From Adineta vaga (taxonomy: Eukaryota; Animalia; Rotifera), in assembly GCA_021613535.1 (NCBI GenBank), contig CP075497.1, positions 992,001 to 1,056,000 of the forward strand: a stretch of 64,000 nt of DNA, given 5' to 3'. Below, piece by piece: positions 11,400-63,372 of the stretch (position 1 is its first letter; every line of letters starts with the position of its first letter). The notes under the pieces are model-generated. The model was not told where the DNA came from. It did not search any database and saw only the letters and a list, made by a program, of their open reading frames with translations. A program made the translations under genes and the position numbers.

Positions 11400-12758
11400 A
11401 TGGAATTATCACCTACAGTTGCTACGGAACAAGTTCCGACGGAAATTAATATAAAAAAAACCACTCGTCGTCCATTAATTCATGTTTTTACTGGTTTTCG
11501 AGCATTAGCATGTTTATGGGTATTTATACTTCATTCTGGAATATACAGTTCGTATGAAATGGTTAAATTTCAAATAGAATGGATTGGATTTGCCGGAGAA
11601 GCAGGTGTTGCAGTATTTTTCTGTCTCAGCGGTTTCGTGATGGTTTGGACTTATGGTGATTGTGAATTTAAATCGACTAAATGTTATTGGTCTTTTATTG
11701 GACGACGAGCTGCTCGATTATTTCCATTATATTATTTCGCATTACTTTTATCTATCTACAACATCAGATGTGTATGGAGTAAAGAGGAAACATGTTCTAC
11801 GGAACATTGGATATTTATCATTTCGACTTTATTCAGCATTCAAACGTGGATTCCCTACAATTTTCCATTCTCTTCATGGAACATTGTAATATGGAGTGTA
11901 CAGACAGAATGGTTTTTCTATTTGGCATTTCCTTTTCTTCTTCGACTGATACGATATCTATTAAATACAACTCAAATCAGTCTTCTTTTGCATAGCGATC
12001 ATAAGAAAAACGCACTAACACGTTTATATGTATTGTGGTTATTAGTTTTGTGCATATCATCAAGTTTCCTTGTAATTCGATTAGTTTTACATGATGATCT
12101 AACAATACCAATACTTGACAGACAAAGCGAAATAATATATTATTCACCCTTCACAAGAATTCCTGAATTTATTCTTGGAATACTTACAGGTATTATCTTC
12201 ATGTTAAATTCATCATCAGATAATTCTACACAAGCAACCGACACTACGCATTTATTACCTAGTAATGATCAACAAGGATATATTGAAGTTGAATCATCAA
12301 TAAATTCTAAACGATATCTTGCGAACTATAATTATCATTATTTGATATTTGATATTTATTTTATATTACAAATAGTCTTTTTTGTTATTATTTATTCTCC
12401 ATTTCTATATCACGACTGGATAGTAACTCCGTATAGACATATCATTGGTTTCGGCCCAATAATTTCCATTATTGTCTGTATTAATTTATATTTTTCTGCT
12501 AAATTTCCTCTATCATTAACATCAAGACTATTAACAACATCATTATTGATCAATATGGGTGAGATCTCATATGCATTTTATTGTTTGGTTGAGGCGTTAC
12601 CCTTAGTTTTCTTACTTATATCGGGTATGAAGGAACAGAGTATGATTATGAAATTCTTTGCTGGTATTGGTATAGCTGTATTTGCTCGTCATTACATTGA
12701 AATACCTTTTTATACATGGGCAAATAAGAAACTAACAAAATGTCAATGTATACATTAA
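11400..12758 (+). CDS. Membrane-bound acyltransferase-3 (OafA/YrhL-like) family protein, intronless
   Basis: 452-aa ORF with family motifs FTGFRALACLWVFILH, GVAVFFCLSGFVM, RRAARLFPLYY, WSVQTEWFFY, MGEISYAFY and YIEIPF, and many hydrophobic helices. Confidence 0.88.
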   Translation: MELSPTVATEQVPTEINIKKTTRRPLIHVFTGFRALACLWVFILHSGIYSSYEMVKFQIEWIGFAGEAGVAVFFCLSGFVMVWTYGDCEFKSTKCYWSFIGRRAARLFPLYYFALLLSIYNIRCVWSKEETCSTEHWIFIISTLFSIQTWIPYNFPFSSWNIVIWSVQTEWFFYLAFPFLLRLIRYLLNTTQISLLLHSDHKKNALTRLYVLWLLVLCISSSFLVIRLVLHDDLTIPILDRQSEIIYYSPFTRIPEFILGILTGIIFMLNSSSDNSTQATDTTHLLPSNDQQGYIEVESSINSKRYLANYNYHYLIFDIYFILQIVFFVIIYSPFLYHDWIVTPYRHIIGFGPIISIIVCINLYFSAKFPLSLTSRLLTTSLLINMGEISYAFYCLVEALPLVFLLISGMKEQSMIMKFFAGIGIAVFARHYIEIPFYTWANKKLTKCQCIH

Positions 12759-13249
12759 AGTATAATGACTGCGAAGTGTTTTTTTTCTTTCAGACATGAT
12801 CTTACATCAATATATATAACAATAAATCTTCACAGATGGCGCTAATGAAAATAACTTTGCACAACATTTGAAATTGTTATGAATTCTCCAGAATAAAATA
12901 GGGCAACCTATATAAAAGCAATTTAAAAGTGTACAGTGAATTGAAGCAAAACAAGAAAGTCATTGTAGAGATACATAAAGAATTCATCAGATAGAGAGTA
13001 AATACTTTTTATCGGACATGGTATTCCACTTTCGTTTACGTAACAAGCAAGTTTGACGGTCAGTTTATCTTCCATTCGCATGTTTGAATAATACAGAAGA
13101 GACATAGACACATAGACAAGCTGAAGCTTTAGAACATTTTATGGTTCTAGAAGAAAGGTTCGGTATATGATGACTGTTTTTAAGAGCGTGTCACATACCG
13201 TTAGTATTGAACGAAATCACCCTGAAAACAACCCCAAAGAACGCATTTG

Positions 13250-13441
13250 TCATCCAATAATTCATGTATTTACTAGTTTTCGTGCATTAGCCTGTTTATG
13301 AGTATTTATATGTTTCATAGTAATATAACGTAAGAACAGCTGATATTTCAAATGCAATGGGTACCATTTAGTGAAGAAGCAGGCATCGTCTTGTTCTTCT
13401 GCATAAGTGATTTCGTGATGGTTTGGACTTATGGTGATTGC
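13250..13441 (+). pseudogene. Decayed partial copy of the acyltransferase-3 5' region
   Basis: ttcatgtatttactagttttcgtgcattagcctgtttatgagtatttata ... tttcgtgatggtttggacttatggtgattg aligns with ~11470-11662. The Trp codon is TGA here, there are indels, and similarity stops at ~13441. Confidence 0.8.
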
Positions 13442-13582
13442 GATAGAGTTTGGTGTGATTGTAACTGTGACCGTGGTGTGGTGACTGAGTAATTTGTCGC
13501 AGAATTAATTAACTGTAACAAGATTATCAAAATATACAGGCACCGAGAAAGAAATAAACAATCTCATGAAAATAATTATGTA

Positions 13583-13645
13583 TATACGAGGGATATTCTC
13601 ACTATAATATACACCCACACCCACACCCACCCACACCCTTATTCA
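13583..13645. repeat. Telomere-like (CCCACA)n tract, part of a degenerate hairpin element
   Basis: acacccacacccacacccacccacaccc at 13611-13638, preceded by a gaggg remnant. Confidence 0.6.
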
Positions 13646-14149
13646 TAGATTTTTATCAAAAGCTTGATTGACGTCATCTTATTTTTACGTTTTATTTCTT
13701 TTTCTTCTAACATTCTAGTCAGTGTATACATATTACAGGGACGAAATATGAAACAGTACAGCTAACTAACTGATATAATCATGAAAAAAGACAAACGACT
13801 CAGCAGAACAGCAAAAATAATATTCTTTTTCGTCACTATTACTAAAAATACATTTGATGTTTATAATGCACTCATGGAAAGTGATTGAATGAATTTATAT
13901 TTTCATAAATAATGAACTTGTTCAATCGTCTCAATTAAGATAAGGATATGTAACATACGTACATTCAAAACAATGTAAAGTATATTTACACATAATAAGT
14001 AGAAAAGAAACAGAATATTTTTATTTTGCATTAAATTGTATGTCAAAACTATAAATGTTTAATTATTCGAAGAATTATTAAAAAAAAGACGAAATAAAAT
14101 AATTATGTCTTATGTAGAAAATACTTTCATAATTAGAGGATAGTTCATT

Positions 14150-15232
14150 CTATATTGATAGAATTCTTTTGATCCATCTATCAAGTTCCTGATTAACTGC
14201 AGCTGGATTTTCTTCCATCACCCAATGAGCAGTTTTCAATGCAACTGTATCTAAATCAACAATGTATGGATTTGGTCCACTATAGAAAGCGATAAGACTT
14301 ATATAATCCTTTGTTCCTCCAATAAAAAGTACAGGCCGTTTGATAATCGGATCGAGATCTTTTTCATCATTCCAGTCAATATTCGTAATTATAGCTTTAT
14401 ACCAATTTAATTTTGGTTGCATTCCTTCGGCAAGATATTGTCGAAAAATTGTGTAATCGTTTTCTGTCATAAATGAAGCTCTCGTAGTTCTCTTTCCATT
14501 GATTAACCAGTTTCGTGCTTTTCCAACTGGAGCTAAATCTGTCTTCCAAAGCATCGAATCATTGGCAAAGGCAAGATCAATGAAACTCTCCAAATTTCTT
14601 TCAATAATTTCTGCTGCATCATTAGCTTCGAAAAATTTCCAATAACCTAAGTTCTCGTATCCAATTGCTTTCCTAGAAGACTCAAGTGCTTGATCTAGAT
14701 CAAATATTTTTGGTTTACTATATCCACCACTAATCAATACAACACCTAATGTTCGTTGCGGTTGATATAGAACAAAACGATTTGCCACATGAGTTCCAAA
14801 ATCGTGTCCAATAATAATAACATCATTTACATGTAAATGATTCAGTAAAATAATGAGATGTTCAACCATTGATTTACTCTTATATTCATCTGTATTCAAT
14901 GGTGAATATGTCCTACCATAACCCATCATATTTGGTGCTAGACAATCGTATCCTTGTCGTAAAAAATGTTCAATTTGAAAACGCCAACTGTGAAATGATG
15001 ATGGAAATCCATGGAGAAACAAAATGGTTGGCTTCGAACTATTATTCATGTTTCCTTTGACATAAATATACTCGTAATTAATACCAGGAATCACTTCATA
15101 GTTCTCTGCTTTTAACACAAGAGGAGAATATTGTTCATAAATGTTGATACTATGAATATTATTTAGTAATAATGAAGATACGATAATAAAAACAGATAAT
15201 AAGTTAAAACTATAATTTATAATAGTATTCAT
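14150..15232 (-). CDS. Epoxide hydrolase-like alpha/beta hydrolase with N-terminal signal-like peptide, intronless
   Basis: HGFP oxyanion motif, GYGRT, GHDFG (Asp nucleophile), lid tyrosines in GYWKFF and LNWYKA, and catalytic His in TAHWVMEE. Residues ~8-28 are hydrophobic. Confidence 0.88.
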   Translation of the reverse strand: MNTIINYSFNLLSVFIIVSSLLLNNIHSINIYEQYSPLVLKAENYEVIPGINYEYIYVKGNMNNSSKPTILFLHGFPSSFHSWRFQIEHFLRQGYDCLAPNMMGYGRTYSPLNTDEYKSKSMVEHLIILLNHLHVNDVIIIGHDFGTHVANRFVLYQPQRTLGVVLISGGYSKPKIFDLDQALESSRKAIGYENLGYWKFFEANDAAEIIERNLESFIDLAFANDSMLWKTDLAPVGKARNWLINGKRTTRASFMTENDYTIFRQYLAEGMQPKLNWYKAIITNIDWNDEKDLDPIIKRPVLFIGGTKDYISLIAFYSGPNPYIVDLDTVALKTAHWVMEENPAAVNQELDRWIKRILSI

Positions 15233-15378
15233 TTCTTTGTATTTGTCTGTGTGAAGTGAATAACAACGAATTATACACTTCTTAATATTTTCTCTCTTTA
15301 TTGATCCTTTAAATCCTCTATTTATTCTTTGCTTTACTCATTCTATTTTCTATTATTCAATAATATCAACTTAATTCG

Positions 15379-15446
15379 CATCTTGTGGGGTGTGGGTGTG
15401 GATGGGAGTGAAGAGGATATACCCTCACCCACACACCCTCTAGGTG
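15379..15446. repeat. Short hairpin/MITE-like element with telomere-like arms
   Basis: catcttgtggggtgtgggtgtgg ... accctcacccacacaccctctaggtg; imperfect inverted ends related to those at 44606-44684. Confidence 0.65.
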
Positions 15447-16169
15447 TATGTTAAAGTTTAGGTAGTTCTATCAGTTGTTAGATATGAATCAATTCATATT
15501 TATCAATATTGAAAGATATCATTGAAAATATTTCTTAATCCATTCAATAAATTCTTCATAATAAAAGTGTTATATATCACACTATCAAGAAGATTCGTCA
15601 ATTGTCTAAGAAAAAATGAACATAAAATTGAAATTATACTTTTTTTCTAATATAAATTCTAAAATAACAATGATACAAGTATGTTTTTATCATATTTTAA
15701 ATGATCAATACATTTAAAAAATCGTCTGTCCTATATTTACCTTTGACAAAAGAAATGTTCTTTTTCTTTGACTATACATTTATCGAATAGGTGTAGAATG
15801 AAATAAAGTCAGGTACTTTCACCTTATCCAAAAAAGTGCATATGTACTTTCAAACTTTCTCTTTGAAGTACATGAAAATAAAGGTAAGACGTACCTATAC
15901 ATGCCTGTGAGAAAGTACACTCGCATATAATATCTACGTAATAACTGTCAAGCCTCTATTAATCAAAAAAGAAAACGTAAACAAAACTAGGTATTTAAAA
16001 GAAAAGAAAAAAATTTATTTTTAGTAATAAATATTCATTCAGACGTGATCAAATCAAACACTCCTCTATTCTATTTAAAACGTCGTATTACACCCAAGAT
16101 TTTCTTAAGTATATAAACACTTAGTTTTCAAATTGATTTGTTACACAAAATAAGAAATTACTATTCAAA

Positions 16170-17808
16170 ATGGATACAACTACCGACGAAATTAATAAAG
16201 AAAAGGTTTATGTTGTTGATGTAGACCCGCCAGTTATTCAAGAGGTTGTGACCATAAAAGATATAGATGAACAAATCTGTGATGATCCAAATGACAAAAT
16301 TCTTCTTCGAAAACTTGATCGTCATTTAATTCCAACAATGACATTATTATATTTATTAAGTTATCTCGATCGTGTTAATATTGGTCAAGCTAAACTTGAT
16401 GGTCTTTTAGAATCATTAAGTCTTTCAAGTTCTCAATACAATGCATGCTTAAGTGTTTTCTTTGTTACTTATGTTTTATTTGAAATTCCATCAAATTTAG
16501 TTTTAAAAAAACTTCGACCAAGTCGATGGATACCTATGATTATGATTATTTGGGGAATTATAATGACACTTATGGGTCTTGTTAATAATTTTTCAAGTCT
16601 TCTTGCTTGTCGACTTCTATTAGGTGCAGCTGAATCAGGTCTTTTTCCAGGTAAGAAAATTTATTTTTTTTCTTCATATTTACATATTTTTTGAATTATC
16701 TCTAGGTGCAACATTTTATTTATCAAGTTGGTATAAACGACGTGAATTATCATGGCGTATAAGTATACTTTTTTCAGCTGCATCATTAGCTGGTGCATTT
16801 GGTGGTATTCTTGCTTATGGAATTAGTCAAATGAAAGGTATAAGAAATCAAGAAGGTTGGCGTTGGATATTTTATATTGAAGGAATTTTAACTGTTCTTG
16901 TTGGAATATTAGCATTTTTTTTAATTGCTGATTTTCCATCAAATCGACCAAAATTTTTAACCAAAGAAGAATGTGATCGAACAATAAGTCGTTTACAATC
17001 AGACTCTGGACCTGGTGCTGGTGAACATTTTAGTTGGAAACAAGTTCGTTCAGCATTTTTAGAATGGAAAATCTATATTTTCAGTTTATGTTATATTGGT
17101 TTTTTGGTTCCACTTTATTCTCTTGCACTTTTCTCTCCAACTATTGTTCAAGGTCTTGGTTTTACCAGTTATCGTGCTCAATTAATGACTGCACCTCCAT
17201 ATGCATTTGCATTTGTAACAACAATGACAACGGCATATTTTTCGGATAAATATGCACGACGTTCGATCTTTATGATATTTTGGGTTTTAATCAGTATGAT
17301 TGGTTTTATTATTCTTATTTGCGTAGAAAATAATGATGTAAAATATTTTGCTATATTTCTAACAATGGGTGGAAATTCACCATGTGTTGCAACATGTATT
17401 ACTTTTATCTCAGGAAATATTAGTCCACAAACAAAACGTGCTACTGCATTGGCATTCATGTTATCTGTTGGAAATAGTGGTGGAGTTATTAGTGGACAAA
17501 TTTATCGAACGGAAGATGCACCACGTTTTATTCTTGGTCATGCAGTTAATCTTGGATTTTGTACATTGGGATTTATTGCAACTTGTATTTTATTTATTAG
17601 TCTCAAATTAGAAAATAAACGTCGAGATAAATTATATGGTTCAGTAGCAAAGTTGAAACCAATTGAAACAAATACAAAAACAGAAGTTGTTGATATTTTT
17701 GGATTAGGGACTGACGAAGACCGAAAAAAATGGGGTTATGAAAATATGACAGAACAAGAAATTAGAGATTTAGGTGATAAACATGCTGCTTGGCGTTATA
17801 TTTTATAA
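16170..17808 (+). CDS. MFS transporter, anion:cation symporter family (fungal Dal5/Tna1 allantoate/nicotinate permease-like)
   Basis: Exons 16170-16650 and 16706-17808 with a 55-bp GT-AG intron join in frame (LFPG-ATFYLSSWYKRREL). Motifs RKLDRHLIP, LDRVNIGQAK, FEIPSNL, GWRWIFYIEG, QLMTAPPY and ENKRRD. Confidence 0.9.
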
Positions 17809-19883
17809 TGTTGACTTTCTTTAATATTAATAAAAATTGTAAATTTTTCATTGTATATGATGACTTTTATCGATAATATCACAAAAATAATTGACAAAAA
17901 TAAGACGAATGAAAAAATTTCCTCATCTACTTTTTTTAAAGTTACGAAAGAAAAACAACAGAACACAAATAATTATAATAACCCTTTTTTTTCTCGTCAT
18001 GATAAATATCGACATTGAGAAAGAGAACAAACACGTGTTTTGATATAAATCGATATTAATTATTAAAAATACATAGTGCATATGATATTGGATAGATTAA
18101 CTATATTGTCGCGAGTTACATTTTTATGAAACTATAGTAGTGAGTATTAAATATTTTAAATAAACTATCGCTTATAGTATAGTATAAAATCTTTGTGTTA
18201 TCGACTATGATAATTCTATAGCATGTATCTGTTATCGGTTTTTACTAGATTAAAACTTATGTCTTTTAGACTATATGCGATGATTTATGACAAAAATCTA
18301 CTAAGGGTTTCATTATAGGACTGAATATTTTTTTCTTCAAAAGAAAGTATTAAGATGAGTAGGTAAACATAGGAGATTATTAATACGATTGCCCCCCTCC
18401 TGCCCTTCCCTTCTGTATAGCTGTAATGTTTAATTGTGTTTTAACGTGTACTTATGACGATCCATGGAGGAGATGGGTCCACATTTCTGTTCTTAAACAC
18501 TCTTTCAGATCGAGTTTCACAAAAATATCGCTAGGGTGTTTAATTGTCTCGTTCACACACACCCTCAATGGTAAAGGATCTTCTCCTGTTGGAGTTGGTT
18601 GAAGTTTTTTTACAAAACATTTAAATTTTTATCAAGAAAGATTTCCACAAATATAAAATAAATAAATCCGATGTTCATCATTCTTGTTATCTACAACTAC
18701 AAGTAATGATTTTCGTTCTGATTCAAGAATTTATACACGTGAAAACGAAATAAATGATCTTTCTATTGTTTTTAAATTTACTTTATTAAAACTATGAAAA
18801 AACATATCAATATATGAACTACATTGATCACTTGTTAATAATTTCATTTCTTATTTATAATACGAATAACGACGTATTGTTTGACGTAAATTTGAGTTCA
18901 ATTCTGTACTAATTATAATGTGCATATGATGACTAAATATAATGAGAAAAGCCAAATGAATGAAAATTCATTCTTATAATTTCGCTCGTGATGCAGATCA
19001 TCCTAAAATAGTTTTCTTTTTTTTCAGCAATATCATCTTAAAGAAATGTATCATTACTAATCATTTTTGTAAAATTTATATTATTACCATCTAGATATTG
19101 AAATAGAATTTTTTTCTTTTCATTAAAATTAATTTTTATTTACTTTTTGTTATAAATTAATTAATATATGAAATGGCATTCCATCTTGATATGTTTCATC
19201 AGCATCAAAATAACAATAAATAATATCTTTGTCTTTCATATTTCTCTCGATGTTTAAATAAAATCTTGCACGTAAAATTGTTTTCCCATCACCGCCCACC
19301 CGCACACTCAAGAAAATATTTGTTGAGGAGATATAATTTTTGATAATTAATTTTTTAATTGTTTTTTTTCGACTTAAATGATAAAATAATGAAATAGAAT
19401 GTATATGTATTGGCTATGTATGGCAAACATTATTTAATTCTCATCATTGAGTGCCATCGGATAAATGACCTGTCTGTTGTAAATTAAAGAGCTTTTCACG
19501 TTGTATTTTATGGTATATTATTATTGTTTATACAATATATGAAGTCACTGCATACTACAACGCAAAACTTATTCATAACAAAAATCAGAAAGACTGTCGT
19601 TTTATCGAAATTTTATTATCATTCTATTAGTTAAAGTACAATCAAATAACACAGCAAAATAGAGCATTATTTTCTGTATAGGATTATATAGAAAAGAAGT
19701 TTATTAATGTATTTTAATTATACTTGCATAAAATACGATGACACGAACTTTTAGTATACCCTAAGTATATATGCAATAACGTATTAAAAATATAACATCT
19801 AAAAGCAGTTCTTCTACGAGAAAGATCTGAGCGAGTGTATATACGAGCATTACTTGTTTTTTAGAGTGTTTTCTGATGTAATT

Positions 19884-22800
19884 TTATTTCTTGTCAATAT
19901 TAGCAGTGATTAGTGGAAAGAGAGACGGATCATTCGCGATGACAAGAGCAAGTTGGGTGACCGATAAATGAGTGAAAAAGAGATGAGTATTGATTTGGGT
20001 AGAAATTTCTTGTTGTAATAAAGCCACCACTTGAAGAGCCTTGAGAGACGTACCACCTTGTTCAAAAAATGATTTGTTCACATCTATATCGTTTGTCGTA
20101 CAATTAAGAATTCGAGCAAACACGACTTCAATGGATTTGACAAGCTCTAGTTGCTGCTGTGGTATATCTACAATAGGTGTTGAACACGGTATATTCACTT
20201 CCTAAAACATATGCGTAGTTATAGATGAAAAGTTTTTATTTCATTACCTGATTATTCTCATTTATCTCACTTTTATTCAATGTGATAATCTCATCCAAAG
20301 GCAACTGTAACTGATTTGTACGGCTCGAACCAAAGAGCTGAGTGAGCAATTTAACGAAGCAATTAGCATGTTGTTCAATCGTTTCTCGTTCAAAGACATC
20401 AAACATGTATCCCCACACGCAATCAATGGTCACAGCGTGCTTGTCATAGGCAAATGAGACATCCAAATCGAATTTGTATCCAATGTCAATATCTTTCATT
20501 GGCTTTTTATAAGTAGAAAGACGACATGAGTCACCGAACATGATGTCATCCATATTCGTATAATCAATAACTGTCGTATCGACGCTGAAGATTGTCTGAA
20601 GATATGGAAATTGTAAGTGTGAATTTGGCACGCGGTGCAAATCAATCAATTTATCGTAAGGTAAATGTGCATATTGAACGCTCGCAAGAAATGTTTGTTG
20701 CACTTTATAAACGAGTTCAGTGAAGGAAAGTTTATCAAGATCGGTATTGACGATACGACATGGAAGAATATTGACAAACATACCGATCATTGAGACAATC
20801 TCTGGTCGATATCGATTCTGATGGATTACACCCACACATGCATCTCGATTGTGTGATGAAAGTTGAGCTAGAAAGAGATAGAAACATGTAAGACCCAGTT
20901 GAAATAGAGTGACATTAAGTTCGTGAGCACAGAGAACCATTGAACGAGCAATCGTTGATGGAACAGCAACACTCAGCAATTCGCCTTGACCTGTGCGACG
21001 AGCTGATAATGGTCTTTTAGTACTACCCAAATCCAATTGTCGATCCCAAGCATAGTCACTCAATAGTTCTTTCCAATAAGTACAGGCTTCTGTCATCGCT
21101 AATTTCCGTTCATGGACAGAATAATCGATGTATTGTAAGCAAGGTGGTGACTGTAGTTCGTCACTTGTATAGGCCAGTTTAAGTTCATCCAAGAACAAAT
21201 CTATAGCTCGTCCATCGAATGAACCATGGTGGAAGTTAAATAGGAGTAAATCATCAGTTGATAATGTGTCTTTCTTATTGCCGTGATCGTATCGAAGAAA
21301 ATGACATCGAAATACGCCGTGATGTTCTGTATCAAATGGTGTCCACATTTCTTCGCGTAATAATTTCTTTTGTTGTTGGCCATCATTGATGGTGCTCACG
21401 CGAATAGGATAAGTGATTGTTTGATGGATCGATTGACGCAACATACCACGTTCGACATCGAAAATGAGTCGAGTACGAAAGATCCAATGATTACTGACAA
21501 CGAAGTTTAGTGCACGAAGACACCGCTCGATCGACAAATGACCCGAATCAATTTTAAATATCATATTCATATTATAGATAGGTGCGACTTGTGGCCAATC
21601 TATGAAACGAGTATGCTCAGCCAACCAGATAGTCGTTTGCGCATATGAAGCAGGACCTAAAAGAAAAAGTGTTTTTGTCATTAGTAACAATAATAATCGA
21701 TCTAATAACCTTCGGTGATATTGAGTGGATGCCATGGTAATTCGAGAGTGACGTGACGTTCTTCAAGCAGATGAGCATGATCAGCAATAGTCGTACCCCG
21801 GAAAAGAAAACTAATATCGATTGATTGTCGAAATTGTGTTTGATAGCTATGATGAAGTTTCATGAGAAGAAGTGAGTGACCACCGAGTTTAAAAAAACTA
21901 ATATTGATCGAAGGAATCGATTTTAAACCGAGCACTTGACACCAGATCGATGATATATGTCGTTCCAAGTCGCTGCGATGCTGCTCATCTGGCTTCGTCG
22001 TGTCTGAAGATAGGAGTGAAAAGTCAGGCGATGGTAGTGCCTTTCTGTCCAATTTCCTATTAAGATTCAGTGGCAAGTCGCTCATGAGAATAAACAGAGA
22101 TGGTACCATGTACAAAGGCAGATGTTTGGAGCATTCATCACGCAACATATTCACGTTCAATTGTACTTTCGTTTCAACATACGCGATAAGATGATCTAGG
22201 TTCTCGTAAGTGAACTTGACGACAACACAATTCGTGATCTCAGACGAAGATCGCATAATCTCTGCTTCTATTTCACCTAATTCAATGCGTTGCCCTCTCA
22301 ACTTTACCTGAAAATCGATGCGACCCACAAAAACCAGTTGTCCATCAGGATTAATTCGGGCAAGATCACCCGTTCGATAGAAGACACCGTCATGGTTAGG
22401 GAATCGAACAAGCACTTTTTCACTCGCTTCGAGATCATTGAGATAGCCAGAAAAGATGCCAACACCGCCCAGGAAAATCTCACCGATGTTTCGCCCGTCA
22501 GGTATGACTTGCTGGCCGTAGCTATCAAGTACACGAACTTTTCGACCAGGTAGACATCGACCAATTGGTACAATCTCTGGAATGTCGTCGTCTGTAGGTT
22601 GCATCTTGTAAAATAGCGCTGATATAGTGCATTCCGCAGGAGCATAAACGTTAATTAAAGAGCAGGAAACTGATAAATGACTAAAAACACTCCTCAGTAT
22701 CTTGCCCTGCAGTTGCTCGCCTGGAAAAAGAAAAATAGAAATGTTCTACTTTTAGTCAAATAGTATCTTTTCTTACCACCAACAGTAATTAGCTTCAGTG

Positions 22801-37800: not shown

Positions 37801-40800
37801 TGATGAAAATTGAACACCAATACATCGGATGGCTGAAGATGATCGGCATCAATGGTTGGCGATCGTCGAATAGCATGACATCGGAACACTCGCCCTGCAC
37901 TCAGTTCGAACAAGCGAGGGTTCGTTTCTTCATCATATATAATCTGTTTTACATCTGACTCTGTCTCAACTATTGTCAAGATGATTTCTAGTGGTACTCG
38001 ATCCAAAACCTCTTGTTTTAGTACACCAGCATTCTCATCAAATGTCAGACAGGTTCGAAGTGCCTTGTGTTTTTTAATTAGTGCAGAAAGAGCTCGTTTT
38101 AATCTCTCTAGTGAGATAGGCATCTGAACAATTTCATAGACAAGAGGAATGTGATATGTGGCCACTGTCTCTCCCACATTACCGAAACGAACACGTTCAT
38201 CCAAGTAGAGACGAGTTTGAGCGAAGGAAGCAGGTCCTTAAACAAGATCAATAGGGATGACATTATATTCGAGAACAACTTACCTTTGTTGATGTTGAAG
38301 GAATACCATTGTGGTTCTATGGTCATCTGATGAGTTTCGAGTAATTGAGCATGATCGAAAATGGTTGCACGACGAAACAAGTCACTAATATTAATTGATT
38401 GTTGAAATTGAGTTTGATAGGCATGGTGTAGCTTCATGAGAAGAAGAGAATTACCGCCTAACTTGAAGAAGCTAAGGCTTGTGGAAGGAGTGGATTCAAG
38501 ATGGAGCACTTGTGACCAAATTGACGAGACTTGTCGTTCGATTTGCGTTTGACATTGATCGTCTCTCGCAGTCAGATCAGTGGAGAGGAGAAGTGAAAAG
38601 TCAGGTGGTGGAAGTGCTTTTCGATCTAATTTACCATTTGGATTGAGTGGAAAATGATCGATAAGAATAAACAACGACGGCACCATGTACAATGGAAGAT
38701 GTTCACTGCACTTCTCATGTAACACACTGATATTCATGGTAAGTTTCGTTTGAACATAGGCGACGAGATGTTCTAAATTGTCATGAACTTGTTTCATAAC
38801 AACACAATTGATAATTTCGAGTGAAGAACGCATAATGACGGCTTCAATTTCGCCTAATTCGATACGTTGTCCTCTTAACTTGACTTGAAAATCAGTTCGT
38901 CCAACATAATGCAAGAGATTTGTTCTGGAGTCGACGCGTACGACGTCGCCTGTTCTATAGAATACACCTTGTTTTTGAGGCAAAGATATAAGTGCTTTGC
39001 GCGTTAAATTTGATTGATTGAAGTAGCCGCCAAACACAGCCTCACCACCAATGTAGAGCTGACCAACTTGATCGTCGCAGAGAACAGGCTGCAAATATGT
39101 ATCAAGAACATGACATGTGTAGCCGGCGAGTGGACGACCGATAGGCAAGGAATCTTGTTGAATGTCGTATTTTGTGACAAGATGAAAGGTTGTTGCGAAA
39201 ATGCATTCAGTGGGCCCATAGAGATGGTAGATAAGTGCAGTCGACCTTAAACAGTTGTAGAGTTGAGATGCTGTTTGAGGTCGTAGTGATTCACCTAAGC
39301 ATAAAAAATGTTTCTACATTGAATTGTTTCGCAATTTACTTTATTTTATAAAAATGCAAATGTTACCTATGGAACAGAGTCGCTTCAGACTGAACAATGC
39401 TTGATGTTGATCAGGAAAGTTGTGTAAATGTTGAGCAAGTATGATAAGAAGCGTGGGTACGGTAACAGCAAAACTTATGTGATGTCGTTGTATGACCGAC
39501 ACCAAATAGTTCATGTCAAGATTTCCATTGGGTCCAAGAAGACAAATAGATCCACCTAGCCAGAGTGTACCTAGAATTTCTTGTATGTGAATGTCAAATG
39601 TAGGTGGTGTTGTTTGTAGAACAGTATCGTTGTGTACCATAATCGCCGAGTAAGCGAGTGCATCAATACAGGCGGCAAAATTTTTGTGACTGATTGGAAC
39701 CGCTTTGGGTGTGCCCGTCGAACCACTTGTAAAAATCACATAAGCAATTGATTGGACGTGAACATTGATATTATCATCATCAGTCCAATTTGTCGAGCTC
39801 GACGATGAGAATATTTGGTTGATGTCAACAACATTTGATGATATGAGGGTGTTTGTTCGACTATGAGTAAGGACACACTTTGCTTGTACTTGTTCAATCA
39901 ATGATCGGAGTCGTGTGGATGGTTGATCCGGAGATAGAGGACAATATGAAGCACCACTCATCAGAATCGACAATATACCGATGATCTGTTATAAGTCAAG
40001 AGAATATCGCTACTATCCTTAAATCGAAAGCGACTTCAACTTACCATTTCGATGGAACGCTCGACGCATTGAGCGATGATGTCTCCTGACTGCACATGAT
40101 ACTGGTCAATGAGATGATGAGCTAGCAGTTGCGACGAGTGCAACAGTTCAGCATAAGTTAGTGATTGATCATCAAGAATCACTGCCAATTTCTGTGGATG
40201 TTCCTCGGCTCGATATGCGAACTGTTGGTGGATAGGTAGTAAATTTTTATGGAGACGCAGCTGCTCACCGCTGTTTAGGTGATTTAGTGCTTGAATTTCC
40301 TTTGGAAGAAGCAGTGAAAATCCAAAGATTGGAGTCGTCGGTGGGGAGGACAACAGTTGGTCAAGAAGAGATTTGAATCGACGAGCCAGAACAATAATTG
40401 TAGATTCATCGAACATATCGCAAGCGTACACGAATGAACCATTTACTTGTCCGCATTCATTCATCGCGATTGATAGGCACAAATCATGTCTAGTCGCATT
40501 AGGTGGACGAATACAACGAATAAGCTCACATCTCTCGGCCAATACTATTTTACTTGTGATCGTCTGAAATCGAAATCCGATTGTCATATAAGGCAATGTT
40601 TTAGTACTGTCGGCTATACGATGAGCCATTATCTTAACAAGTTCGATCAAATGAACAAAAGTTTTTTCAGGTTCGACATATAATCGAAATGGAACGAATC
40701 GATCAAACATGCTAGTTGTACGGGTGATTTCGTACCGACTCGCATTAGTCACATGGCTATCGATAATCAGGTCTTGGCATTGTGTCAATTTATAGAGAAA

Positions 40801-41905
40801 AACATAGTAGGCGGATAAGTACACTTGAAATAAGGTAGCTTGTGCTTGAGAAGCGAAAATGAGGAGTGACTCGCCTCTGTCTAGTTCCAGATTCACCATT
40901 GACGCACGACCCGTGCGAATTGACGTTGATGGACGACGATCGTAGGGCAATTGCAGCTGGTCCCCAAAATCTTTTAATGTCGTGTTCCAAACTTCTGATC
41001 CTGATAACATATTGTCATCTCTATCGTCTCGTTCCAACAATGTATAATTAATATAGATCGATGTAAGATCGTCGTTCACATCAAGCGTGAGAGTTGAATA
41101 AGCCTCTCTCAAATCGGTCAGAAAAATGGACTCTCTGAAATAATCGAAGATTGCATGATGAAAATTAAATAGCAACATATCGCCAACAGTGAGAAGATCT
41201 TCCTCGATTCCATTGCTTCTTCGAATCGCATAACAACTGAATATTCGACCAATGGTAAGATCAAAATGAGTTCGATTTGTTTCTTTGTCTTCACTTTCGA
41301 CCTTACTCATTTGCACTAAGGAAATAATCTCGGTATCATCGAAAGGTACAATGCATTGGTGCAGTTTGTTACTACCATCAGATGTGGCTGTCAGACGGAT
41401 ACGTAATGTTGGATGTTTGCTGACAAGGAGTGCGAGTGCACGATTAAGACGTTGAAGAGAAAGAAATGAATCTGGTGATATGGTAAATACAAGCTGTGAC
41501 GCAGAACTAAGGCGCTCTCGTTCATCCAACCAAATGTACTCTTGCGCAAACGAACCAGAACCTAGGAAAAAAAGCACGATTCAGGCAAAATTGACAGCTG
41601 ACTTTACTTTGATTTGCATGAGGTAGCCTTTTCTCGTTTGTCATGAGTAGACGAACATGTTGATCGATGGTTGGTTGTGTCAAAAAGTCCAGTAGATTGA
41701 GATAGTGACATGGAGTCAAATCGAGTTGATAGTGATTGAAAAGTTGCATTAAAGTCAAAGATGAACCACCCAAAGCGAACCATGTTATAGACTCTTCATT
41801 AGGAACTTTGTCTAGATGCAACAGTGAACACCAGAGTTGACGTACCTTGTCATGAAGTATCTTGTGCTCAGAATCGTTCGAGTTTGTAGAATTTTCTAGT
41901 GACAT
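19884..41905 (-). CDS. Multimodular nonribosomal peptide synthetase, ~7098 aa, T0-(C-A-T)x6-C-T, 15 exons
   Basis: ATG at 41905, stop at 19884-19886. GT-AG introns (plus-strand coordinates): 41562-41607, 39986-40044, 39295-39366, 38237-38283, 35974-36019, 34913-34959, 32637-32689, 31576-31622, 28325-28371, 26674-26732, 25000-25046, 22721-22776, 21657-21709, 20202-20247. Removing them (725 bp) leaves 21297 nt = 7099 codons in one frame. Six A domains (FTSGSTG.PK, FD, Y(G/A)P.E, Y(R/K)TGD, GR.DF.VKLRGQRIEL, NGK.DR), seven C domains (HHAIFDY, HHAAFDG x5, HHGSFDG) and eight T domains (GG[S/N/H/T]S). No TE, R, E or MT domain seen. Confidence 0.92.
23091..25665 (-). repeat. Near-identical internal NRPS repeat (A C-terminus, T, 47-bp intron, C, A N-terminus), copy matching ~33004-35575
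   Basis: Reading the two regions side by side shows only scattered substitutions over ~2.5 kb at an offset of ~9.9 kb, including the intron. Confidence 0.85.
31130..32520 (-). repeat. Internal NRPS repeat block (A C-terminus, T, intron, C N-terminus)
   Basis: Matches ~24555-25665, ~34465-35720, partly 38058-38630 and 27880-28324. The 32220-32520 part also matches ~22305-22604. Confidence 0.8.
33004..35720 (-). repeat. Near-identical internal NRPS repeat, copy matching ~23091-25665 and in part 36337-36830
   Basis: Same text in several copies, e.g. the DNA encoding DERVRFGNVGETVATYHIPLVYEIVQMPISLERLKRAL and HEQFACRAWEHPQKL...PTNHRNFT. Confidence 0.85.
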
Positions 41906-42677
41906 TTTTGTCTTTTTCGAAGCGACTAGGAGAGAAATTAGTAGACAAAAAGGGATAAACATGAAAGAATTTTCGAAAGACAAAATGAGTTGTCTGAAAA
42001 CATTCTGGACGCATCTTTGTAGAAAGGTTTAACCTAAGAAGGAACTCATATGGAGCTTTCTTGAAAAATAAACTTTGAGGTGCCGGTGATAACTGTAAAC
42101 GAAATTCTTATGCAACAAATGAACTCGTCATCTATGAATCTATGAGTTTTGAAGGAAATAATTCTACTCAAAACCTAATCATCTTCAATAGAAATAGTTT
42201 TAGAAAGTCAGAACGATTTTTCAAAATACTTTTGCAACATGATGGAAATAAAATATGTTAATCAAGAAAAAGTGTTTCTCCAGGCTTCAGAACAAATGAC
42301 TGAGTTATTACGTTTATTGTCAACTTGAGAAGAAGAGAAAAAGTCGTAAATCGCACTGATAATCCAAAATGTCCTTGTGTTCCCGATATTACAGTTTTAT
42401 ATATAACTGAGATTTTGCATTGTCATCGCATTGCTTGTTTTTATGATCTTATAATCAACAATCACAAAATCCGTCAATGATTATTTGCGTACTTGAAAAT
42501 ACATCAAAAGTGCACCGTCATCATCATCATCATCCTTATCTGCAATCTCAGGTGAAATAAACTCAGCTCATTCTTCTCTACTCTCGGCAAGCTGTTGCTA
42601 GTGACTGTTGGTAGAACATCCATAGTTTCATAAATAAACCTTCAGTAGACATTGCAGCTAATTTCTTTGAAATAACG

Positions 42678-43172
42678 ATGTCGATAGAAAGTAGAACAAA
42701 ATTCCTGCACACAAAAGAAATCAATGTTTCCAACAACGAATCAGACCAGACTTCCCAACCTCCATTTAAAATGCCTCGAGCACCACCCCATGTCTACTCT
42801 TGTTTTGTCATTAATCGTACGCAGCATCCTATAGAATGCATGGTTCACTATGACGGCCGTCCAGGTGAAGACAAATTTAATGAAGACATTCACGTCACCA
42901 TTTCTGCTAATGATGAAAAATTTTTCCCTCGTTGTTTGTTTCAACCAGATTTACCTGATTCGTACTGCAAATGGGTCAAAATTGTAACTCATATTAAGGT
43001 GAAGAAGCACGATGGTAAAGTGCTCGAAGTCTACTATCCATTTGATCATGTTTATTGTCCAATTCGTAATTGGGAATTTCATGTTTGCGACGAAGGCGAT
43101 ATTTTATCAAAACCACCCACCCGTCCTGCAAACTTACTAAAATATGAAGGACTTGATGAATACGAACGATGA
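42678..43172 (+). CDS. Small hypothetical protein (164 aa, or 133 aa from the ATG at 42771), head-to-head with the NRPS
   Basis: Clean ORF with coding-like composition followed by AATAAA (~43181). No recognised family. Confidence 0.6.
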   Translation: MSIESRTKFLHTKEINVSNNESDQTSQPPFKMPRAPPHVYSCFVINRTQHPIECMVHYDGRPGEDKFNEDIHVTISANDEKFFPRCLFQPDLPDSYCKWVKIVTHIKVKKHDGKVLEVYYPFDHVYCPIRNWEFHVCDEGDILSKPPTRPANLLKYEGLDEYER

Positions 43173-43619
43173 TTACCAGAAATAAAAGTGATTTTGAGTT
43201 GACATAACGATCGGATCTTTCCGAAATTTCTTTTCAGTATTTCTTTCTCATTATCCGCTAATAGTGAACGGTATGCGATCACTGTGTATACAGCGTTACA
43301 ATCGAGAGCAGTAAATACAGTTTATGAAATTCATTTTCGACTACAAATGATGATGGCTATTATAGCGTTTATATTTTCATCTTTAAGATAGTGTCTATTT
43401 CGAGAACAAGGGTGCACTTATTTGGATTTTTATTTGTATCAATTTTTAAATAGAATTGCAATCAGTCAGGCTTGAGACCCCAAACGAATAAGTTAGATAC
43501 AATACACGTTCTAAGTAGTATACTACGGTGCCGTTATGTGGTGTATAATATGCATGTTACAAATTTAGTAGCTTATCAAAAAGAGGCTGTATTTCGTTAT
43601 TTTATCTTTCGTTTACAAG

Positions 43620-44605
43620 AAAATGTTTGAACCATCTGACCTATATGGTCGACATCACCTTTTGTATTATTATAACATAAGATAATCTGTGGCTTTTTTC
43701 CTTTCCTCATCGACGATTATCTGATCATGATAAACAGATGACAGCAAAATCGCAATGATGAGTATCAGGTTGCAACTCTCGTGGAATTTCCTTCTTATTT
43801 CGTCGAAAAGCTCCTACAAGAGTCGTTTGAACACGTAAAAGATCTTCTTCCAACTCTACACTAGTACAATAGTTGTCCGTAGTAATAGTTCATTCTGTAT
43901 TGATCCAATGATGTACCAATTGTTGTACTAGATTAAGAATTAGATTTGTATCTTTGTCTGCAGCTACTGCATCAGGTTGACGCCCCAGATAAACATCAGC
44001 ATTCAACGGATATACTGTATCCGAATCGCAACACCAAAAGATCTGAAGCTCGTATTTTCCAGGTTTATTAGGGATATATTGATGAAAATTACATCGGCCA
44101 CTGTGAGTGATCCACCAGGCGTATAACATATTTGTAGCCGGGCTAAGAATATTGTCCATAGATCTCTTATTGCTGCCAGTTTATCTACTTTCAGTTTTTC
44201 TTCTCGTGATGATGTATTGCCAAATTGGCAAAACCGAAGTAAGCTTTTGAAACGATTCTTTGTCAAAGTTGCTCGAAATATTGGTCGTCCATATTTCATC
44301 AGAATATGTGTTCTCCCATTGGCTTTCTTTGTCAGAATTTTGCTTATTCCATTGTTTCAAAATCAGATGCATTCGTCGATTGATTTCCTTCACTAAAAGA
44401 AGAACAATTTCTTGAGCTATCAGAAGCTGAAATGCATCTTTCACAGTTTTTATACCTACAGCTGGTCGTTCAATACCATTTTGCTGCCGCAAGATATTAG
44501 CTGATGGTATTTTTCCATTGGGAGTTACCTTTAATATTCATTGCCGTACAGATTTAGCTGTAAATATTTGAACCGGTGATTGTTCAACTTGTGATTTACG
44601 TTTCG
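43620..44605 (-). mobile_element. Degenerate piggyBac (PGBD4-like, DDE_Tnp_1_7) transposase relic
   Basis: Fragments in three frames: FTAKS..NILRQQNG, GRPIFRATLTKNRFKSLLRF, DKLAAIRDLW...YTPGGSLTV, QYIPNKPGKYELQIFWCCD, ITTDNYCTSVEL and TTLVGAFRRNKKEIP. Frameshifts and stops; the first catalytic DE motif is lost. No TIR/TTAA ends identified. Confidence 0.85.
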
Positions 44606-44684
44606 CATCTTGAGGGTGGGTGTGGATTAAAAACATAACCACATCCACACCCACACTCACACCGACAGCTACACCCTCAAGATG
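44606..44684. repeat. 79-bp hairpin/MITE-like element with perfect 13-bp terminal inverted repeats and telomere-like interior
   Basis: CATCTTGAGGGTG (44606-44618) ... CACCCTCAAGATG (44672-44684), with internal gggtgtgg / ccacacccacac. Confidence 0.8.
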
Positions 44685-45750
44685 GGATATGGATAATCCG
44701 TCCTATCCGGTGTCTTAAACGTGTGGAAACGTTATCATGTACATAATTATAATATTAGTAATAAATAGAAAATGGGGCAATGAGCACATAAGCGAAATCA
44801 TTCAAAAGGATATTTCTTGGAATGAAATTGAATTGAATTCAGAGAACATGATAAATAATTTCGAGCTCAACTCAATTCGATCCGATGATATGCGAAAAAT
44901 CGTCACAATTTAATTCGTTCATTTAGAAAAAAACGCATTCTCAATTCAACTCAAAATATGAGTTGAGTTGTTGAACTCGTCAATGTGCATTCGAGTATTA
45001 CTAACAAGACAAGATATAGTATATGTATGTGTGTTGTTGAGAATAAGATAATTCATTAATTACATTATCCTAAGTAATTAGAAAATGATGAGGAGAGAGA
45101 TATACACATTTTCATGATGAATTGCTTTAATTCAGATAAGAGAAAGTAAAGATTCACGACTGAATAGAGTGGATGAATACATTTTAACATCACTAACTAT
45201 ATTTCAGATAGATTCAACAGTTGAAACGATATTTAAGTGAATAATAAAGATTTGGTGATTTTTACCAAGATGATAAATAATGAATCTCTTGATATAATAT
45301 CAAAACAAAGATTGATTTGAAAACAATAAATAATATAGAAGAAAATTGTTTTCCTCTTGAATACTTTCCACGAATGATATATCTACGAATTATTTTATTA
45401 TAAAATTCGAACAAATCCTAATCGTTGATTGTAATTATCGTTGTTTTCAATACCATTAGTCAATGATACGATAGTTAAAATGTATGTTAAGTTAGACAAA
45501 GATGTTGAAAAATATATTTGTTTTCCTAACTTTTATCCATTGAAAATTAAAACAAATACAACGTATTTGATCACATGATTGAATATAATAAAAAGATCAG
45601 GTTTATACGACAGAACGATATAAGCATCATATATAAGGAGTTCTCGCATGTTTCAGGCACTCTTTACGATTCATTTCAATCATTTACATACTTCAGAATC
45701 TCCTCAAATAGTTTATTTTACATTCATATTTACAGATTACAAAAAGTCAA

Positions 45751-47298
45751 CTAATCTCTTCTTTGTACACGTGCAAGAATTCCGTTTTTGGCTTTTATTG
45801 TTACACCTTTCATTTCAGGTACAATGTGTTGTCCTGGTATAAGTTCAAAATTGCAACGTTGTACAAGCATAGCAAGTATTACTTTAGCTTCAAGTATAGC
45901 AAAGTTTTGTCCAATACAATTTCGTGGACCTGCAGCAAATGGAAGAAAAGCATATGGATGTGTCATTTTTTGTTTTAATCCAGTCACAGGATCACGTATC
46001 CATCTTGTATAATCGAATTTGAGTGGATTAGGCCAGTAATCTTCACGTCGATGCAAAACATAGTTATGAATGATAATCATGGCATCAACAGGTACATGAA
46101 GTTGAAATTTACCACTGTTAGTACCAATCGTATGTTCTTTTACACATTGACGAACAAAGAAAGGAGCTGGTGGATATAGACGAAGAGTTTCATAAAGAAC
46201 AGCTTCAATAATTTGAAGTTCATTCATATGTTCGAAGGTAGGTAATATTCCATTGGATAGGACGCAATCAACTTCTTTCCGACATGCTTGTAATACTTCA
46301 TCATGAGTCATTAACATGTGAACAGCCCAGGTAATTAAATTTCCAGTTGTTTCATGACCAGCTAAGACGAAAGTGAGGGCTTCTTCTTTAATTTGTTGAT
46401 CTGTAAATGGTTCACCCTGATCGTCAGTGGCTGACAATAGAAGATCGAGAATATCTTGACCTGCACACAAACTATTTGTTTTTCCTTTTCGTCGATCGGC
46501 AATAGCCTGATCAACGAAATCACTAACTTGTTTTGCTCCCTTATCAACAATATTCTTACCCCAAAATGGCAATTCAGCTAGAAAGTTTATTTGATTGATC
46601 ATTCGAAGTGTTCGGTATTCTACTATATCCTTTACTTCTTGAAATGTTTGACACATGATTTCTTTTGCATGTGATGACGTTTCAAAATCCACACCGAAAG
46701 CACTTGATGCGATAATAGAAAGAGTTAAACCATTTAATTGAATTTCAAGATCAACTTGACCTTTAGACGATGATCCTAACAGAACAGAATGAATAGCCTT
46801 TGTCGTTTCGTCTGACATAATCGACACCATTGAACGAAGATTGATAAAATGAAAGGCAGGATTAAGCATTTTACGTGCACGATCATGTTCTTTTCCCTCA
46901 CTAACTAAAAGATTATGTGTACCAATAAATGGTTTGACAATATTAGTTAGATCAGTTGGTTTTCGATAGTTAATACCATTTTCACGACTTAAAACATCAC
47001 TTAAGACTTCCGGTTCAGCAAGTATGATTCGTGTTAGATGACCTAAGCCAAGTAGATAGCAATAGCCATGTTTTTGTGCAAGTTCATTGAAATAATCCAA
47101 TCCTTTACCAACTTTCTTAGCTTGGATTATATCTGGTATTTGACCAATAAGTGGAATGAATGGTTCTCCAGGAATTCCTTGAGCTCGAAAAGCATCATAT
47201 AATTGTTTTTGAGAATGAATTAGTTTGAAGTAAATAACTCCAATAAGAACAAGAATAAGCCCAATAAGAACAAGAATAAGCTCAATAAGATAAATCAT
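45751..47298 (-). CDS. Cytochrome P450, membrane anchored, intronless
   Basis: N-terminal TM helix, I-helix FVLAGHETT, K-helix ETLRLYPP and heme motif PFAAGPRNCIG; 515 aa. Clan not assigned without a search. Confidence 0.93.
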   Translation of the reverse strand: MIYLIELILVLIGLILVLIGVIYFKLIHSQKQLYDAFRAQGIPGEPFIPLIGQIPDIIQAKKVGKGLDYFNELAQKHGYCYLLGLGHLTRIILAEPEVLSDVLSRENGINYRKPTDLTNIVKPFIGTHNLLVSEGKEHDRARKMLNPAFHFINLRSMVSIMSDETTKAIHSVLLGSSSKGQVDLEIQLNGLTLSIIASSAFGVDFETSSHAKEIMCQTFQEVKDIVEYRTLRMINQINFLAELPFWGKNIVDKGAKQVSDFVDQAIADRRKGKTNSLCAGQDILDLLLSATDDQGEPFTDQQIKEEALTFVLAGHETTGNLITWAVHMLMTHDEVLQACRKEVDCVLSNGILPTFEHMNELQIIEAVLYETLRLYPPAPFFVRQCVKEHTIGTNSGKFQLHVPVDAMIIIHNYVLHRREDYWPNPLKFDYTRWIRDPVTGLKQKMTHPYAFLPFAAGPRNCIGQNFAILEAKVILAMLVQRCNFELIPGQHIVPEMKGVTIKAKNGILARVQRRD

Positions 47299-63319: not shown

Positions 63320-63372
63320 TGAGGGTAGGTGTGGGTGTGGGTCAGGCTATACTCTTAACACCCACCCTCAAA
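63320..63372. repeat. Hairpin element with telomere-like arms
   Basis: tgagggtaggtgtgggtgtggg ... acacccaccctcaa. Confidence 0.65.

Follow-up and report, generated by a model that had tools for sequence, protein, structure and literature searches.

Does the DNA around a nonribosomal peptide synthetase (NRPS) gene in an animal encode one pathway assembled from genes of different origins, or does it hold a synthetase among incidental neighbors? The question is raised by a 64,000-nt stretch of chromosome 6 of the bdelloid rotifer Adineta vaga (C6:992001-1056000; here called the window, with positions counted from its first nucleotide), part of a 100.8-Mb assembly in six contigs. The chromosome is 13.9 Mb long, and the locus lies ~1.0 Mb from one end. 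Genes for a membrane acyltransferase (Acyl_transf_3, or AT3), an epoxide-hydrolase-type enzyme, an MFS transporter, an NRPS, a 164-amino-acid (164-aa) protein, and a cytochrome P450 follow one another here, and the original prediction, made from the sequence, was that they form an animal biosynthetic gene cluster. Pfam scans of the long open reading frames (ORFs) confirmed each listed gene in its place, with matches for the AT3, hydrolase, MFS, the run of NRPS frames, and the P450 and with the 164-aa ORF unmatched.

With a probability of roughly 0.6, we read the locus as a domesticated bacterial-type NRPS in a repeat-littered, near-terminal part of chromosome 6, next to which the other neighbor genes were juxtaposed independently rather than inherited together as a cluster, and for which the small 164-aa gene is the sole stable partner. 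The acyltransferase, hydrolase, MFS, and P450 genes would each have arrived, or been brought alongside, on their own.

Structure of the NRPS gene

The synthetase is encoded on the minus strand by one gene, which was modeled by bridging each gap between adjacent open frames with a single canonical GT-AG intron.

41905 (ATG) to 19884 (stop), minus strand: NRPS gene, 15 exons and 14 GT-AG introns of 46-72 nt
41608-41905, minus strand: exon 1, N-terminal carrier domain T0 with the motif GGSS (PP-binding, E=2.3e-5, partial match)
41607-41562, 40044-39986, 39366-39295, 38283-38237, 36019-35974, 34959-34913, 32689-32637, minus strand: introns 1 to 7
31622-31576, 28371-28325, 26732-26674, 25046-25000, 22776-22721, 21709-21657, 20247-20202, minus strand: introns 8 to 14
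20248-21656, minus strand: terminal condensation domain C7
19884-20201, minus strand: exon 15, terminal carrier domain T7, after C7 (PP-binding, E=2.3e-12)

The coding sequence of 21,297 nt comprises 7,099 codons including the stop, giving a protein of 7,098 aa, and no stop falls inside any exon. Exons were translated and searched singly, and the concatenated exon DNA was used solely for length and GC counts (GC of 0.41 in exons and 0.30 in introns). The frame-preserving model of 7,098 codons, with all catalytic motifs kept, bears out the earlier view that the gene is intact. It also corrects the public annotation, in which the gene is broken into several proteins, including I4U23_027572 and I4U23_027573, and it includes an exon (exon 15, 20201-19884) that falls beyond the end of the NRPS as first perceived.

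Pfam searches of each exon ORF gave the domain order T0-C1-(A-T-C)x6-T7, where A, T, and C are adenylation, carrier, and condensation domains; the matches comprise six AMP-binding, eight PP-binding, and seven Condensation domains. The description of the NRPS as hexamodular thus stands for its A domains, but the protein, with seven C and eight T domains, is larger than was described. The motif HHxxxD is kept in seven of seven C domains and GGxS in eight of eight T domains. The A3, A7, and A8 motifs were also found, and the Asp at the FDxH position is present in all six A domains. With A, T, and C domains in module order and the core motifs in place, the gene encodes a multimodular type I NRPS. 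Pfam gave no match to a thioesterase or reductase domain in the NRPS, and the gene ends in C7-T7, with the motif HHGSFDG in C7; its relatives in other rotifer contigs likewise terminate in C-T.

The predicted chemistry rests in part on substrate pocket codes, which are approximate and provisional, were anchored on conserved motifs, and follow what we take to be the GrsA numbering. They read DIQVCILFA (A1), DENDIVIIS (A2), DEQDIVIIS (A3), DAPHCSLDV (A4), DILICLLLI (A5), and DEDDIVVIS (A6). The A1 and A5 pockets are hydrophobic, and positions 1 and 5 would take hydrophobic substrates. Those of A2, A3, and A6 are lined by acidic residues, and therefore positions 2, 3, and 6 probably take basic residues. 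In the proposed sequence of steps, T0, as the first carrier domain, would receive an acyl starter, six amino acids would then be joined by the six A-T-C modules, and C7 may serve for release, cyclization, or one further joining step. Any N-acylation would be carried out by the T-C starter of the NRPS itself, without the Acyl_transf_3 protein. No acyl-AMP ligase gene was found in the window.

A T-C start and a terminal C domain are features of lipopeptide synthetases such as the fungal echinocandin synthetase EcdA. The A. vaga NRPS shares with that type a T-C pair ahead of its six A-T-C modules and, in place of a thioesterase, a terminal C domain; it differs from EcdA in that its sequence affinity is bacterial rather than fungal and its last C domain is followed by an additional carrier domain.

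Origin of the NRPS and the module mosaic

The nearest nonrotifer relatives of the NRPS are bacterial proteins of 5,500-7,900 aa with 25-30% identity (27-29% for the best). Those that are named include a Longimicrobium metagenome-assembled genome, which is the nearest, and the BD1-7 gammaproteobacterium. Elsewhere in the A. vaga genome, paralogues of the terminal C domain reach 36% at most. Related synthetases with 65-72% DNA identity occur in Rotaria, in A. ricciae, and in environmental rotifer contigs; this NRPS lineage is therefore an old one among bdelloids. The closest A. ricciae relative, P0245, was considered as a strict orthologue and rejected, as its DNA identity is 69%, compared with 85-88% for the MFS and P450 relatives from that species.

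Modules 2 to 6 (21657-38236) form a mosaic in which blocks of 97-100% identity alternate with blocks of 45-85%. Sliding comparison of modules 3 and 6 gave 97-100% identity across ~1,950 nt, and along the pair identity is 68-84% in 23125-22600, then 96-100%, and then 63-80%; other module pairs show such blocks too. The divergent segment coincides with the substrate pocket.

22600-23125, minus strand: divergent A-domain pocket segment of module 6, which carries the pocket residues and lies within blocks of 96-100% identity to module 3

This pattern fits gene conversion between modules that spares the substrate pocket, as judged from the sequence, and misassembly of repeats is a possible alternative source of the mosaic. 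Several modules share introns at equivalent positions (at two A-domain sites and in the T-to-C linker), and it follows that the modules would have been copied after the introns arose, that is, within the rotifer lineage.

A separate observation concerns contig ERZ26165376 ctg351538 (L032; 1-12109), which encodes a 702-aa C-T protein that is 63% identical to the terminal C domain. Its gene neighbors are of bacterial kind (MlaD, a Tle1-like gene of the type VI secretion system [T6SS], and a DUF4258/DUF2283 pair), together with an ART/TPR gene. This contig could be a chimeric low-coverage assembly or could carry a truncated copy.

The 164-aa gene is the recurrent partner of the NRPS

The small ORF next to the start of the NRPS had been set aside in the original prediction. 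Instead, it proved to be the only conserved partner; it or a close paralogue is paired with NRPS genes of this type in several other bdelloid contigs and at two further A. vaga loci.

42678-43172, plus strand: gene of unknown function, 164 aa, no Pfam match, predicted beta-sandwich
41906-42677: spacer of 772 nt between the divergent NRPS and 164-aa genes, a possible shared promoter region

On contig L123, the 164-aa ORF stands head-to-head with an NRPS start that is collinear to the A. vaga NRPS, with identities of 64% in T0, 46% in C1, 59% in the first part of A1, 63% in the rest of A1 plus T1, and 56% in C2; the best match of its C1 is C1 of the A. vaga NRPS. Contigs L124 and L125 have the same head-to-head layout. 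In L033-L036, a 65% homologue of the ORF lies 5 kb past the 3' end of a related NRPS that ends in C-T.

Within the A. vaga genome, an intact 77% paralogue at C3:4511335 stands head-to-head with a decayed T0, C1, and terminal-C-tail remnant, which is broken into ORFs of 104-211 aa (C3:4511335-4514651; L127/L128). This locus appears to derive from an old duplication of the pair, with later collapse of the synthetase. A 48% paralogue at C3:15289925 is 6.6-9.9 kb from NRPS pieces. No NRPS is within reach of the chromosome 2 copy of the ORF or of the one on contig L122. On its other side, the ORF is flanked by something different at each locus, namely GH35, GH32, peptidase S9, or a transposon plus a P450 gene.

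Clustering at 90% identity groups the ORF with sequences from environmental assemblies, 13 members in all, and the core of the family is strongly conserved, with many invariant Cys and His positions. Its AlphaFold (AF2) model is an eight-strand beta-sandwich with a pLDDT of 64, and fold searches with this model returned generic beta-sandwich matches (best Z of 8.8, Foldseek E > 1e-3, TM of ~0.5). It recalls MbtH-like proteins in that its gene is small and is repeatedly linked to NRPS genes in different lineages. Unlike them, it has no MbtH Pfam match (PF03621) and is modeled as a generic beta-sandwich of eight strands, so an MbtH-like identity was not borne out; no bacterial relatives were found in the genomes scanned.

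An origin in Gemmatimonadota, with cotransfer of the ORF and the NRPS, had been prompted by an Atlas hint and by Longimicrobium being the nearest bacterial NRPS relative. This candidate was dropped: scanning GTDB genomes by pattern did not find the ORF, nor did searches of 4 NRPS-bearing genomes of Gemmatimonadota and of a set of 401 from that phylum.

We tentatively suggest, as a possibility that is more doubtful than not, that the 164-aa protein evolved in rotifers as an accessory to this line of NRPSs, whether as a helper, as a carrier of the product, or in self-protection. Its gene would have remained head-to-head with that of the synthetase, possibly under one promoter common to both, and been duplicated together with it, while gene conversion would homogenize the modules except at their pockets. 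If this is true, an assembly line that an animal gained by horizontal transfer has been extended with a component of the animal's own making.

Between the NRPS 3' end and the small-ORF homologue of L033-L036, at ~5450-6880, there is also an FMO-like gene with a weak resemblance to Lys/Orn oxygenases. This gene, which is absent from the A. vaga window, may encode a tailoring or precursor enzyme.

Neighbor synteny and local repeats

The four other neighbor genes lie on both sides of the NRPS and small-gene pair and are interspersed with repeats.

11400-12758, plus strand: Acyl_transf_3 membrane acyltransferase, 452 aa, single exon (PF01757, E=2.7e-16)
13298-13456, plus strand: scrap of a decayed second Acyl_transf_3 copy, 47% identical to the intact gene over its residues 39-93 and containing one stop
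13611-13638: telomere-like (TGTGGG)n tract, between acyltransferase and hydrolase
14150-15232, minus strand: epoxide-hydrolase-type alpha/beta hydrolase, 360 aa, single exon (Pfam Abhydrolase_1)
15386-15438: inverted pair of telomere-like tracts, between hydrolase and MFS
16170-16650 and 16706-17808, plus strand: exons of the MFS transporter, 527 aa (Pfam MFS_1), with a 55-nt GT-AG intron at 16651-16705
43476-44606, minus strand: degenerate piggyBac-type transposase fragment (DDE_Tnp_1_7 on ORFs 43890-44159 and 44003-44299)
44610-44665: inverted pair of telomere-like tracts, beside the transposon fragment
45751-47298, minus strand: microsomal-type cytochrome P450, 515 aa, single exon (Pfam p450, E=5e-83)
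63330-63341: telomere-like (TGTGGG)n tract

Neither the MFS nor the P450 gene stays beside the core gene; of the genes compared in relatives, the 164-aa ORF alone does so. The relatives of the MFS and P450 genes in A. ricciae, and that of the P450 on chromosome 5, have no adjoining NRPS, which speaks against the proposed assembly into one pathway. The best P450 paralogue in the genome (84%) occupies almost the same coordinate on chromosome 5 and also has NHL and FG-GAP genes in its vicinity, and the 140 kb around it holds no NRPS, acyltransferase, hydrolase, or MFS gene. The A. ricciae MFS relative (87% in amino acids and 85% in nucleotides) has no window gene within 10 kb or up to the nearer contig end, and the A. 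ricciae P450 relative (88%) has no NRPS, small ORF, or other neighbor within 10 kb or the contig end. The latter gene lies instead in a tandem duplication of ~9 kb with GST-N/FG-GAP and LOR genes (L027, CAJNOJ010000280.1), and the P450 relative in A. steineri has yet another gene context. Paralogues of the acyltransferase, hydrolase, and MFS genes are scattered across five chromosomes, with none adjoining one another, and a P450 gene lies within 10 kb of an NRPS at just 2 of ~17 listed NRPS loci. For the acyltransferase, scans of JGI metagenomes gave no match with a single-protein query and, with an alignment of the paralogues, only relatives of 25-44%, unusable for synteny.

Base composition also sets the core gene and its neighbors apart. 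GC is 0.39-0.42 across the NRPS block, compared with 0.27-0.35 in the surrounding DNA. GC at third codon positions (GC3) is 0.36 in the NRPS, 0.32 in the 164-aa ORF, and 0.12-0.22 in the AT3, hydrolase, MFS, and P450 genes.

Telomere-like tracts in bdelloids are signs of breaks that have healed and of DNA added piece by piece near chromosome ends. The window contains seven such matches, compared with 0.06 expected. The same hexamer has been used as a marker of subtelomeric regions (Nowell 2024, PMC11258130). The piggyBac fragment, which sits between the 164-aa ORF and the P450 gene, has >10 copies in the genome at 77-85% identity, mostly near chromosome ends. The prediction had itself carried the caveat that foreign genes accumulate near chromosome ends, and synteny and repeats make that caveat the better reading of the locus. 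The listing of the span was correct for the genes it named but had omitted the piggyBac fragment, the acyltransferase scrap, and the telomere-like tracts.

Given ~40 NRPS loci in the genome and loose gene categories, the chance of such a combination of genes is put at ~0.1, a rough estimate made by judgment rather than computed. A combination exceeding chance could not be shown.

Expression in RNA-like contigs

Sampled words of the NRPS were present in RNA-like contigs from four runs of one 2024 study (fractions of 0.33, 0.31, 0.18, and 0.14) and in none of three runs of a 2022 study or three of a 2013 study. Coverage of the neighbors was examined on 11400-17399 in four runs, namely, the two richest in NRPS words, the 0.14 run, and one zero run. 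The hydrolase was covered in parts in two runs. The MFS gene was covered in none of the four, including the runs that hold the NRPS, which is evidence against its expression alongside the synthetase.

Alternative explanations

Several points weigh against the reading of independently juxtaposed neighbors. The NRPS introns were modeled from sequence and not from RNA reads, and the expression data are assembled contigs from runs not recorded as RNA. Among the four neighbors, synteny in other species covers the MFS and P450 genes alone, and as no strict A. ricciae orthologue of the NRPS was found, its loss in that species is possible; the adjacency could also be a young functional assembly specific to A. 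vaga. The two runs richest in NRPS words (X1 and X2) cover the acyltransferase at 11478-12749 and nothing outside the ORF, a restriction which argues that these contigs are transcripts, and the gene is uncovered in the two NRPS-poorer runs (0.14 and zero). This is a weak hint that acyltransferase expression tracks that of the NRPS. Two other acyltransferase copies are 15 and 46 kb from other NRPS genes. Finally, the recruitment of animal-type neighbors has a precedent because, at another bdelloid locus, a PKS-NRPS (a hybrid with a polyketide synthase) is flanked by coinduced metazoan CYP4-like P450, ABCB1 transporter, and MFS-like genes (Nowell 2024, PMC11258130).

One alternative is a minimal functional unit of three genes, in which a late-recruited acyltransferase would act in tailoring or self-protection alongside the NRPS and the 164-aa protein, with the hydrolase, MFS, and P450 genes as bystanders. 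The small ORF's conserved place beside the NRPS, the coverage of the acyltransferase ORF solely in NRPS-rich runs, and the two copies near other NRPS loci would all agree with such a unit, but we consider it unlikely. The coverage comes from four runs of low-depth contigs, and at this locus the acyltransferase is 7 kb from the NRPS, with two genes between them. At C3:1.66 Mb, the closer of the two other cases, unrelated GPCR and TPR genes intervene between acyltransferase and NRPS. The association of the two kinds of genes (3 of 6 acyltransferase loci within 50 kb of an NRPS) was judged not significant, because both kinds favor chromosome ends and because the intervening genes are unrelated.

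Still less probable, and in our view quite improbable, is a true chimeric animal cluster, in which an NRPS hexapeptide would be modified by the acyltransferase, P450, and hydrolase, exported by the MFS protein, and produced in coregulated defense. That five genes are all intact within 36 kb, that the acyltransferase was detected with the NRPS in two runs, and that coexpressed genes flank the PKS-NRPS of the published case would be expected of such a cluster. However, the MFS and P450 genes lack this adjacency at their closest A. ricciae relatives and, for the P450, at the chromosome 5 paralogue; the MFS went undetected where the NRPS was detected; between the genes lie telomere-like tracts and a transposon fragment; and the GC3 of the neighbors and the scarcity of P450 genes beside other NRPS loci point the same way.

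That the NRPS is a decaying or silent relic without a product, in a span of neutral subtelomeric debris, is highly improbable: the collapsed paralogous locus at C3:4.51 Mb, the divided public annotation, and the absence of NRPS words from the six runs of two studies would fit decay, but an open frame of 21.3 kb whose 14 introns preserve the frame and in which every catalytic motif is kept, pocket segments that remain distinct despite the surrounding gene conversion, and NRPS words in four runs of one study oppose it.

The neighboring genes and flanks

The acyltransferase scores 60 bits against the Acyl_transf_3 cutoff of 31 and covers profile positions 5-318 of 326, which places it in that family. 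It has four intact paralogues in the genome (57-63%) and no relative among solved structures, and language-model features, which serve as a lead only, liken it to eukaryotic Acyl_transf_3 clusters.

The hydrolase finds its best solved relatives in mammalian soluble epoxide hydrolases (E=1e-27). It has HGFP at residue 74, GHDFG with the Asp nucleophile at residue 142, and, in alignment with human soluble epoxide hydrolase, an HW near the C terminus. Having the HGxP motif, the Asp nucleophile, and the C-terminal His, it can be classed by its sequence as a putative alpha/beta-fold epoxide hydrolase.

The MFS transporter is identical to A. vaga protein I4U23_027570, and its intron is visible in the alignment with A. 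ricciae. Its nearest nonrotifer relatives are basidiomycete yeast transporters (46%), one of them named Tna1-like. The annotation of the A. ricciae MFS (P0002; L025/L026) reads through a 57-nt intron, giving 546 aa compared with 527 aa in A. vaga, which probably reflects a mistake in the annotation.

The P450 has the heme motif FAAGPRNCIG and a hydrophobic N terminus. Its best solved relatives are CYP4B1, then the plant CYP97-type LUT5, and then CYP3A5/7/4, and on these solved relatives, rather than a phylogeny, it is classed as a probable animal-type microsomal enzyme (CYP3/CYP4-like). It belongs to a large bdelloid family, and an exact-protein look-up with its sequence returned no record.

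The genes are therefore of mixed origin, as had been proposed, with bacterial kin for the NRPS, basidiomycete kin for the MFS, and animal-like relatives for the P450 and hydrolase. The characterization of the neighbors as secondary-metabolism-type proteins holds at the level of Pfam only, as the P450 and hydrolase are animal-type by their best solved relatives. The statement that unrelated genes bound the span was correct.

968-9517, left of the span: very large SPRY plus HECT ubiquitin-ligase gene, with two long ORFs of 2,228 and 604 aa
Right-hand flank: gene of unknown kind, FG-GAP gene, and NHL gene

The SPRY/HECT gene has paralogues of 71-72% at two places on chromosome 3. A second NRPS lies ~100 kb to the right on chromosome 6 (C6:1135058-1139771), and on chromosome 5 (C5:682361-703263) a P450-like ORF lies ~5 kb from a different NRPS.

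Comparison with known systems and significance

Two papers have cataloged A. vaga NRPS loci by antiSMASH (PMC11258130 and the animal NRPS survey PMC10531068), and the first of these describes ~40 clusters, 27 of them subtelomeric (Nowell 2024, PMC11258130). The present locus resembles those clusters in having a horizontally acquired, intron-bearing synthetase near an Adineta chromosome end, with a CYP4-like animal P450 and an MFS-type transporter adjoining; a role in antimicrobial defense has been proposed for them. The focal case of that study differs in being a PKS-NRPS hybrid with ABCB1 neighbors and measured coinduction, whereas the chromosome 6 locus has a pure NRPS of the form T-C-(A-T-C)x6-T and its neighbor synteny fails in A. 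ricciae. The concept of neighbor recruitment thus has a published precedent at another locus. As in fungal and bacterial biosynthetic gene clusters, the core synthetase stands beside a transporter, an oxidase, a hydrolase, and an acyltransferase at the level of Pfam; unlike in those clusters, the neighbors differ in origin, have repeats between them, and are not inherited together with the core synthetase. The present analysis contributes a full NRPS gene model, negative synteny tests for the MFS and P450 genes, and the recurrent pairing with the small ORF.

Taken together, the evidence points to a five-gene picture that is mostly positional coincidence and to an overlooked small gene as the one to pair with the synthetase. 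Which neighbors truly belong decides what must be coexpressed to obtain the natural product, and it bears on whether animals build new pathways from foreign and native parts. Among animals that use horizontally acquired synthetases, bdelloids are the clearest case, and the use may be directed against fungal pathogens.

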